Shown: piece after piece, positions 27,301-30,300 of the stretch | How positions within the stretch are numbered: position 1 is the stretch's first letter | Layout: every line of letters begins with the position of its first letter | NCBI GenBank assembly: GCA_964035545.1 | Contig: OZ037766.1 | Span: 15,056,722 to 15,120,721 of the forward strand | DNA length: 64,000 bases | Direction: 5' to 3' | Origin: Bugula neritina | Lineage: Eukaryota; Animalia; Bryozoa | Notes under the pieces: model-generated | Seen by the model: only the letters and a program-made list of their open reading frames with translations | Database searches by the model: none | Told to the model about the DNA's origin: nothing | Translations under genes and position numbers: made by a program

Positions 27301-30300
27301 TAGTTTGGTAATGTTAATTTCAAATCTGATTTTAGGAAAAAAACTTGTGACATGTCATTGTTGAAATAGCTACTGTTATAATGTAAGATATTGTAATATA
27401 TTTAACGGCTGTATCTGACACATAATGTGGAAACACATTAGTGGTCATACATGGTAGAACTATCAACAAAAAACTGTTGCAGTCTTGTAATCTGCCACCA
27501 ATGTGTGTTATCATTGGTGGTATTTTTATATTATATATGATCAGCTCAGAACCTTTTTGTGAAGCTAACAATTTGTTTTTCATATAAAAATTGCTTAGGA
27601 GTGTATACACATGTTTACTGAGAAGCAATGGAGACACGCATTCTGCATTGTTTGAGAATGACTCAGCTGCCTGTCCATATATGGGAAGCTAATTTATTTA
27701 TCACATAGATCACAGCTGAAATAAACTGTCCCAGCATCAAAACCACAATAATGTCACCAAAATTCTTGTGTTACATTAAAGCATTCTAAAACTTACTTAT
27801 AACAGCTTATGCTAAAAACCCTATTATTTTGCCCATGTTGCCAAACGTAAAAAATACATTTATAACTTTCAAATAAACATTATAAATAGAATCTAGTTTT
27901 ACCTAACACAATTGAATGCAGGCATATCTTAGCAGAATTTTGCTCTCAGATGTGAGCAGCAACAAATTTTGACTATCTATTTTTCCAAGTAATACCTATA
28001 AGAACTGTATTTAAACTTATCGTTACTGCAAAAGAAACATTCAAATATTTACTATATATTTACAATAAAATATTATAAAAAAGTAATATTTGTTTGCAGT
28101 ACTCCCACCATATTTTAGAATGTAAACAGTAAGATATATATTTAGTGTATATCTGTAGATTCGTACAAATAAAAACTTAACATTCCTTGAAGTGACGAGA
28201 ATCTTGCAACTTCTGGAAGTACAATAAATAAATAATGCACTTATTTATTTTAAAAATGAATTATGATTGTGGCAGTTTTTTATTTATTTCTTTTTTAGAA
28301 TGCCCCAATGGACATCCTTATTTCATTGGAGATGTGAGTTAGTTATTTTCTTAATTCTCTCGCTACATATAAAATTTGTGTGTGTGCGTGCCTGTGTCTA
28401 TATTTGTAATTTTTGAGTAATACTATTTCTAGTGTTTCTTTGCACCCCTTGACTATAACTATTATACAAGTATGTCAATATTTATTTTAATAATAAAACC
28501 TGTTCCAGTGTGGAAGACCTGTTGAACGAGCCCAGTGCACAGTTAATGGGTGTGGAGCCTATATTGGCAGCACTGGTGCCTACAACCAAGCTGCTGCTGA
28601 GAATGTCAACATTATAGCTGAAAACATGTTAGCTTTTATTAGTTACAACTGACTATGTGTTAATGTTTTAGTGTGGGCGTCCGTGGGTGTTAGCCAAGTG
28701 TCCCACATGTGGTGCACAAATTGGAGGTGAACAACATACTGGAGCTGCTGGGAATCAAACAGTCACAGCAACTGATAGGTACTGCAGCTGATGAAGTTGT
28801 TTGGTTTCCGATGAGCAGTGATTCTTTTACTAACAACAATTTATCTTTATAGTAACTCTCAATGATTTTATTTAATCATCTAGATTTAAAAATTGTCTCC
28901 ATTTTCTAATTTTCCAATTTCTTCACATTTGAAGTTTGGCAACCCTTATATTCCTCAATTTTTTTTATGTGTCGTCTGTGTATAAGTCTACAGATGTATA
29001 TATGCGTGCTATTTTAGGTTGATACTATATGATGTATATTAGAAACACTGTTATATTACAGTTCAGGAAAGACTCAACCTGGTCATATACTGGGTACAGC
29101 AGATAGAAGGAGTCAAACTGCTCCAGAGAGAGACTTGAATTCTCTTTCCTGTGCTGTGTTGAGGTGTTTGACTCATCTGAGTATGTACACAGCTAGTCTG
29201 TTCAACATTCAGCATGTAAGTCATATCTGTTTAATATATTCTATTATTAACCTACAGTTTACACTTACTATTAAGTATGTACACAGCTAGTCTGTTCTAC
29301 ATACAGTTATCTTTGTATAACTCAGGTACATCAAATGATCCGCCCAAACTTAGCAAGAGTAGAGGATGTTCGACCATTCATAGATGCTCACATACAGTTA
29401 GACTTACAACAGATTGCTCAGTGTTGTGCTGAGAGTACAGATGATTGTATTCTACTACTTCATGATGTCATCAACAGGATGAAACAAGGTGTGTGGGAAT
29501 CTGATTAGTTGACTGTATGATGTGTCTGATTGGTTAAAAGTTTTACCAAACACAAACTGTTGAAATTTATCTGTATATAGTGTGTGCAGATGATTGATTA
29601 AAATTTTAAGAAAGTGAAATTGCCAATATGTTTTCATTATTATAAGTGAATGTACTGTTGATTGGGTTAGTTATTATGAAGATTGGCACTGCTATTCCGA
29701 TCACCAGATATGCACGTTGAAGAGCGTTGAGTAATGGTTTGGGTGAAAGCTGCAAAAATTAGTTTTTAAATTTTTTGAATCTAGTTTTGCTATATTATCA
29801 CAAGGACGTTAATAATGGTGAGTGAAGTTTATGATATTCTCAGTGATATAATCCTGTGTCTACTAATTTTCGGAGCAATGCACCTTCGGAATATTGCTCT
29901 GTCCCCGTTAATAATACCAGTTGTTTGACACAAACCCAAGACAAACCAACTGGTCTAAAGCATGCTAATTGATTCATGGTCATGTTGCGCTGCATCATAG
30001 TAATAATAGTGATATTGGTATTTAGCTAAAAGAAGCGGTAGCAACACTGTTTTGGACTCAATCGAAAAGAGGAAACAGTGGGAGCAACAGCTTGACAGAA
30101 AGTATACTCAACCTACTTTCAGTCAAAAGGTAATTAAGTTCCTTTACCTGGCACTGCTGAGCACTTTTTACCTGACGTGTGCATATACTAAGCAGAAAGT
30201 GATTCAGTTGTGTATAAAAGGCAGTGTTAACAGCCACTGCAGTATCAATGATGGAATGTGTTTAGAGCCAGGGTATAAGAGGAAGTAGCTGTCTGGGCAT

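Follow-up and report, generated by a model that had tools for sequence, protein, structure and literature searches.

The RNF213-type gene on the forward strand of the DNA analysed here (the window: 64,000 nucleotides of the Bugula neritina genome, contig OZ037766.1, positions 15,056,722 to 15,120,721) contains a mutually exclusive pair of tandem exons, A and B, that is real and expressed and that encodes the second half of the RZ finger of this E3 ubiquitin ligase. As read from its residues, exon B is a canonical RZ half, whereas exon A is a variant half without the canonical catalytic dyad, carrying Tyr instead of the general-base His (Table 1). The pair behaves as known tandem pairs of mutually exclusive exons do; what sets it apart is the exchange of His for Tyr in an active site. 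On balance, we hold that the best overall explanation is a choice of exactly one of the two exons, by which the ligase would acquire two chemistries. The splicing part of this explanation is highly probable and a distinct biochemistry of the A and B forms is probable, while the direction of the difference (ester ubiquitylation by the His form, a slower or amine-biased Tyr form) is put forward tentatively.

Table 1. Features of the RZ exon pair and its surroundings (positions in the window)
Feature	Position	Strand	Evidence or remark
Upstream coding exon, specific to this gene copy	27113..27219	+	Single genome match; RNA joint 27219>28299
35-nt constitutive exon, RZ first half (Cys and His metal ligands, CPNGH)	28299..28333	+	DNA, RNA, profile alignment
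Exon A, Tyr class, 119 nt	28509..28627	+	RNA joints in 3 studies; Pfam RZ E 0.0017
A-B intron, 44 nt, CTGAC at 28649-28653	28628..28671	+	DNA; identical in copy 2
Exon B, canonical His class, 107 nt	28672..28778	+	RNA joints in 4 studies; Pfam RZ 38.7 bits
Next constitutive exon (GHILG...LTH), RNF213 E3 module	29062..29215	+	RNA; weak PDB matches
The one RZ exon (His class) of the window's second RNF213 paralog	53695..53801	-	Its 35-nt exon is 53982-54016

A sequence-only reading of the window had described A and B as homologous tandem exons that both start with the Cys codon of CGRP, and their coordinates, starts and phases were borne out by DNA and RNA. The 35-nt exon ends with a GT donor; exon A has a CAG acceptor and the donor AT/GTTAGC (the slash marks the exon end), and exon B a TAG acceptor and the donor AG/GTACTG. 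Both exon lengths are 2 modulo 3, and both exons begin at the catalytic Cys and end in phase 2. A frame check agreed with the earlier claim on inclusion: A alone or B alone is in frame to the exon at 29062, whereas joining A to B leads to a stop six codons into B and skipping both leads to a stop after 14 codons. The short A-B intron and its CTGAC motif, also noted before, are present as well, with the branch-like A at the 25th of 44 bases. Both exons match positions 25-53 of the Pfam ZnF_RZ-type family (PF20173), exon B above the cut-off of 27 bits and exon A below it (18.4 bits, with the half-domain exon alone as query). An RZ profile including A and B hits mammalian RNF213 in the PDB (E 1e-16 to 1e-17), and the 35-nt exon aligns with the human RNF213 RZ via profile A8. 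The gene begins upstream of the window; its exon at 24084-24485 matches RNF213 chains in the PDB (E 5e-5), and the only PDB matches of the exon 29062-29215, weak at E 0.07, are to RNF213 just after the RZ. Within the intron after 29215, the final part of the exon before it is nearly repeated (29199-29300).

Expression was assessed with assembled contigs from four runs of four studies (X1, X3, X4, X8) aligned to 27000-30300; the contigs were taken as RNA, a guess of the tool, and they skip GT-AG introns. The 35-nt exon is joined to exon A (28333>28509) in X3, X4 and X8 and to exon B (28333>28672) in all four studies, and the ends of A and B are joined to 29062 in three and four studies, respectively. 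Among the RNA contigs from the four studies there was no A-B joint (28627>28672), no joint skipping both exons, and no contig from which the 44-nt intron alone had been spliced out; as these are assemblies and not reads, rare A-B products and true isoform ratios are invisible to them, and contig depth was rejected as a measure of isoform ratio for the same reason. The junctions predicted for exclusive use, with A and B each joined to both flanks, are therefore present in the contigs, and together with the frame logic and conservation they support the proposal that the catalytic half of the RZ is spliced in a mutually exclusive manner. The end of exon A differed from what had been read from the assembly: exon A is spliced in RNA, but it ends with ACAG, as in copy 2 and another haplotype, whereas this assembly has ACAT, for which reason the joint at the A end is printed as 28623>29058. 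The ending of the window assembly itself was absent from the RNA contigs.

A second, inverted copy of the whole gene with both A and B intact (copy 2, in which A and B are 51% identical) is located about 113 kb away, and because its upstream exon differs from that of the window gene, transcripts can be assigned to either copy. In X8, the window gene joined to B (record 20; 48+107+35+105+83 nt) and copy 2 joined to A (record 21; 152+35+115+85 nt) were read directly. From its lengths, record 6 of X3 (48+107+35+38) is a window-type transcript with A, and the B contig of the same study begins 25 nt inside the 35-nt exon, at the point where 31-mers split between A and B; because record 6 passes this point unbroken, the branch should be that of copy 2, which would thus make both forms in X3. 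Record 13 of X4 (29+107+35+5), window-type by its lengths, stops at the same branch, and X1 probably shows copy 2 with B. Across samples, contig geometry suggests that the window-type gene and copy 2 were each seen with both exons, most clearly copy 2.

A haplotype or near-paralog on a JGI contig (L017:716-1762; JGI 3300002729) is similar to the window gene in the region of the 35-nt exon. Exon A (CGKP, AAAGN, donor AG/GT) and the downstream exons are intact in it, its A-B intron of 869 nt has been enlarged by about 825 inserted nt that include short inverted repeats, and exon B has lost 48 nt, both metal Cys among them, making L017 a natural Tyr-only allele. The A contigs of X3 and X4 merge at 28517, consistent with the CGKP variant, so that window-type A transcripts may derive from this A-only haplotype and the use of both exons by the window gene may be partly allelic. 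The earlier idea of a splicing toggle consequently holds for the exclusive splicing of the pair, but toggling inside this gene copy was not seen directly, and haplotypes differ. Exon A is 94-96% identical and gap-free between the window and both copy 2 and the JGI haplotype; in the comparison with L017 it reaches 94% without gaps, the flanking introns 81-90% and the next exon 96%, and exon A is thus constrained like coding sequence. Private to the window, whose own version of exon A is absent from the RNA contigs, are a change of Gly to Glu in AAAGN and the AT/GT donor of exon A.

These differences bear on the possibility that the pair has been subfunctionalised in this species, with each copy or haplotype effectively using one exon and with exon A of the window haplotype decaying. 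The single contigs of X8 (window gene with B, copy 2 with A), the haplotype without a functional B, the four amino-acid-changing differences between window and copy 2 in exon A compared with none in exon B, and a third copy that lost both exons are in agreement with such a scenario. Yet both exons of copy 2 are intact, the geometry of X3 implies that both forms are made, and the donor of window exon A still has six of nine matches to the U1 consensus, like RNA-confirmed donors; the pair in other animals would be unaffected in any case. We consider subfunctionalisation rather unlikely, and it is compatible with the choice between two chemistries, as both can hold. In the latter explanation, which we prefer, one gene would yield both mRNAs, and the isoform ratio would be set by splicing in some genes and by paralog choice in others.

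The assignment of metal ligands, CGRP Cys and His made in the sequence-only reading agrees with the metal site, Cys nucleophile and His general base described for the RZ (PMC11549300; PMC12075652). The predicted metal ligands are C-x3-H in the 35-nt exon and Cx2C in exon B, widened to Cx4C in exon A. The catalytic Cys follows the metal His by seven residues, the spacing of mouse H4455/C4462. Exon B has His nine residues after the second metal Cys, the spacing of mouse C4462/C4471/C4474/H4483, and retains its share of RZ residues as had been proposed. Ligand spacing and catalytic Cys are the same as in the known RNF213 RZ (human C4505/H4509/C4525/C4528, C4516, H4537; mouse C4462/H4483), which resembles exon B in keeping His and whose protein is matched by the flanking exons; unlike in the known RZ, the second half is encoded here on two alternative exons, one of them with Tyr and Cx4C. 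Exon A does lack a general-base His, but to call it simply His-less falls short: it has a Tyr ten residues after the second Cys and belongs to a widespread Tyr class, and the replacement by GSTGAYNQ is a Tyr displaced by one residue, not a mere loss. In a Tyr-only paralog (L007) the Tyr is at +11, and in every non-bryozoan Tyr exon parsed it is at +9, exactly the position of His.

In the mechanism that we propose, both isoforms would bind zinc and accept ubiquitin from an E2 on the CGRP Cys. The His form would use His as a general base and could ubiquitylate hydroxyls that are weak nucleophiles, for instance on lipid A. The phenol of Tyr is a poor general base at neutral pH, and the Tyr form is therefore expected to take up ubiquitin normally and to discharge it more slowly or to prefer amines; it would not ubiquitylate hydroxyls at neutral pH but would still be a working ligase, or one with another acceptor preference, and Tyr may position the acceptor instead. 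The location of the exon A Tyr, one residue off and beside the Cx4C insertion, argues against this explanation. The His of the RZ has been proposed as an activator of hydroxyl acceptors (bioRxiv 10.1101/2025.10.14.682297); when it is mutated in ZNFX1 (H1881N), all RZ-dependent activity is lost (bioRxiv 10.1101/2025.09.05.674436), and in mouse RNF213 (H4483A) autoubiquitination is lowered less than tenfold (PMC12075652). His4537 was modelled adjoining the catalytic Cys (PMC11549300), and a Tyr there could conceivably reach the thioester, such that ubiquitin would pass from Cys to the phenol next to it and form an aryl ester there; aryl esters are labile and we found no precedent, which makes this highly improbable.

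Tandem Tyr/His exon pairs with the same phases (AG/TGY acceptors and phase-2 donors) were found in at least three other animal lineages: at 11 worm-type loci, at L042/L043 and L082, and at L047. The case for the pair is stronger than in the sequence-only reading, and at the DNA level the pair is conserved beyond this species. In the worm-type loci, from JGI metagenomes that we take to be gutless marine oligochaete samples, the Tyr exon comes first, both exons are 98 nt long, and the intron between them measures 59-72 nt. Other marine samples yielded L042/L043 and L082, in which Tyr precedes His with introns of 227-373 nt; at L082 the whole neighbourhood can be read, CPNGH exon through GHILG exon. 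At L047 the order is reversed, His then Tyr, with 43 nt between two exons that are 66% identical. L083-85 represent a Tyr-only gene. An RZ without introns that carries Tyr in the place of the His, located at the end of a 116-aa ORF on a GC-rich contig (L081:1273-1623; JADEYI010000127.1), suggests that the Tyr class may reach beyond animals; its AlphaFold2 model (pLDDT 73.7) consists of a short helix and beta strands, and a Foldseek search with this model gave nothing significant.

An arrangement for steric exclusion by a short intron, as first suggested from the spacing in the window, fits the spacing of 44 nt in the window, of 43 nt at L047 and perhaps of 59-72 nt in the worms. It does not fit L042/L082, whose introns of 229 and 373 nt led us to reject one universal steric mechanism. 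Frame incompatibility would be the general guard against joint inclusion of the two exons: the frameshift probably keeps them apart in all cases, and the short intron probably does so here as well.

Should the two exons be catalytically alike, the pair might serve to diversify the RZ surface (contacts with target, E2 or ubiquitin, or escape from microbial antagonists) with His and Tyr both tolerated. Between paralogs, RZ exons have only 41-66% identity, against 93-98% at the DNA level for the exons next to them, and in trees L050, a His exon, groups with the Tyr exons of L042/L082, so that the residue can switch on one background. Surface diversification would, however, also yield His/His or Tyr/Tyr pairs, and each tandem pair found, in four lineages and in both orders, consists of one Tyr and one His exon; the metagenome pattern demanded His or Tyr at the general-base position, and the absence of other residues there thus cannot be shown from it. 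We regard this alternative as very unlikely.

It is conceivable, if somewhat doubtful, that invertebrates at large possess a Tyr class with an acceptor chemistry of its own, that the splice switch has been kept or has repeatedly re-evolved, and that RNF213 uses it during infection to pick ester ubiquitylation (of LPS, lipid or glycan) or amide or other ubiquitylation.

Selection was measured at eight distinct worm-type loci. Here, pN/pS was 0.29 for the Tyr exon (bootstrap 0.15-0.49) and 0.41 for the His exon (bootstrap 0.24-0.69), and neither the Cys residues nor the Tyr or His varies among the loci. The worm Tyr exon is thus under purifying selection. When the Tyr exons of L042 and L082 are compared, 20.5 differences are synonymous and 5.5 non-synonymous. 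In trees of 27-28 exons (32-33 columns), four to six His/Tyr changes are needed, and a single Tyr clade was not rejected (p-AU 0.08). The grouping of L050 and the reversed order at L047 hint at repeated origins.

With these data, exon A as a dead duplicated pseudoexon is ruled out, and we assign this idea practically no probability. It could draw on the weak Pfam score of A and on a search of 1.84 billion proteins at E 0.001 that gave no distant homologue of exon A itself, but exon A is spliced at both ends in three studies, is gap-free and better conserved than the introns around it, and belongs to a class that is conserved in other animals with its Tyr exon under purifying selection. The single match of exon A among the 1.84 billion representatives was conspecific (P0001); its 39 amino acids are too short a query, and this blank search is therefore uninformative. 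The Tyr/His relatives were found by profile searches.

The Tyr-only genes, the A-only haplotype and the selection on Tyr, which argue against a dead exon, argue more weakly against a pure decoy, in which the Tyr isoform would be charged with ubiquitin, barely discharge it, and act as a brake that dampens the His form in mixed oligomers or coats. The established weakness of Tyr as a general base would suit such a role. So would the complete loss of RZ activity in ZNFX1 H1881N and the cooperativity of RNF213 in coats (PMC11549300). A brake would hardly explain why Tyr-only paralogs persist (L007, L083), why the residue is a conserved Tyr and not any residue, and why the Tyr exon is constrained at least as much as the His exon. 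Given the Tyr-only genes and the activity that mouse RNF213 retains when its His is changed to Ala, we judge a pure decoy unlikely.

Mutually exclusive tandem exons are well known from Dscam, PKM 9/10, FGFR IIIb/IIIc and alpha-tropomyosin 2/3, where a frameshift, or a donor too close to the branch point, keeps equal-phase duplicates from being included together. Unlike in these pairs, the swap described here affects an E3 active site, exchanging its general base and the loop that bears the nucleophile. The RZ of ZNFX1 (C1860/H1881) follows the same Cys/His dyad model, with His required for RZ-dependent activity; it differs in its helicase host protein, and neither a Tyr class nor an alternative exon is reported for it in the papers searched. 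A zinc-binding domain with a Cys nucleophile adjoining a His base also occurs in the MYCBP2 RCR and in RBR RING2 (PMC12075652). These share the dyad with the RZ but have different folds. Neither is known to have a natural His/Tyr switch made by splicing. In the literature searched, which included few subscription papers, no paper combined RNF213, the RZ finger and mutually exclusive exons, and none described a Tyr RZ class or alternative RZ exons. With A or B alone as query, a PDB sequence search gave no RNF213 match, although the RZ profile did, and the ESM Atlas gave no usable match.

How RZ-type E3 ligases choose between hydroxyl targets such as lipid A and lysines is an unsettled question for which the catalytic His has been proposed to be key. 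The exon pair provides natural matched pairs that differ at the general-base residue within one protein and have been kept under selection in several lineages, and the question could thus be tested without engineered mutants. Splicing of an enzyme active site would also be a route by which invertebrates diversify cell-autonomous immunity; these animals may run one antibacterial immune ubiquitin ligase with two chemistries.

The genome contains at least seven RZ-bearing copies: two with A and B, one decayed, three His-only (L003, L004, L006) and one Tyr-only. At the second RNF213 gene of the window, on the minus strand, only the single His exon is present and no remnant of exon A was found, as the sequence-only reading had stated for this paralog. 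An open frame between the two RNF213 genes (41491-41838) looks by eye like a fragment of a sterol reductase (DHCR24-like), with no match in Pfam. In the decayed third copy (L005/L012; G000:C4:18816400-18816720), exon A has frameshifting deletions, the 35-nt exon is altered, and exon B lacks 18 nt including the His; its five tested neighbour exons are open (77-98% identity), and it is possibly an RZ-dead but coding RNF213. The Tyr-only paralog (L007:1480-1593, minus strand; G000:C2:15267374-15267487) is 59% identical to the worm-type Tyr-only L083:3013, with weak grouping (87/84), and the two perhaps represent an old Tyr-only RNF213 lineage. The window regions 26710-26904 and 29072-29503 show 93-98% DNA identity to L013 and L014, yet the RZ exons of these paralogs share only about 45% identity at the protein level. 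The identity of the flanking exons points to possible gene conversion around a divergent RZ.
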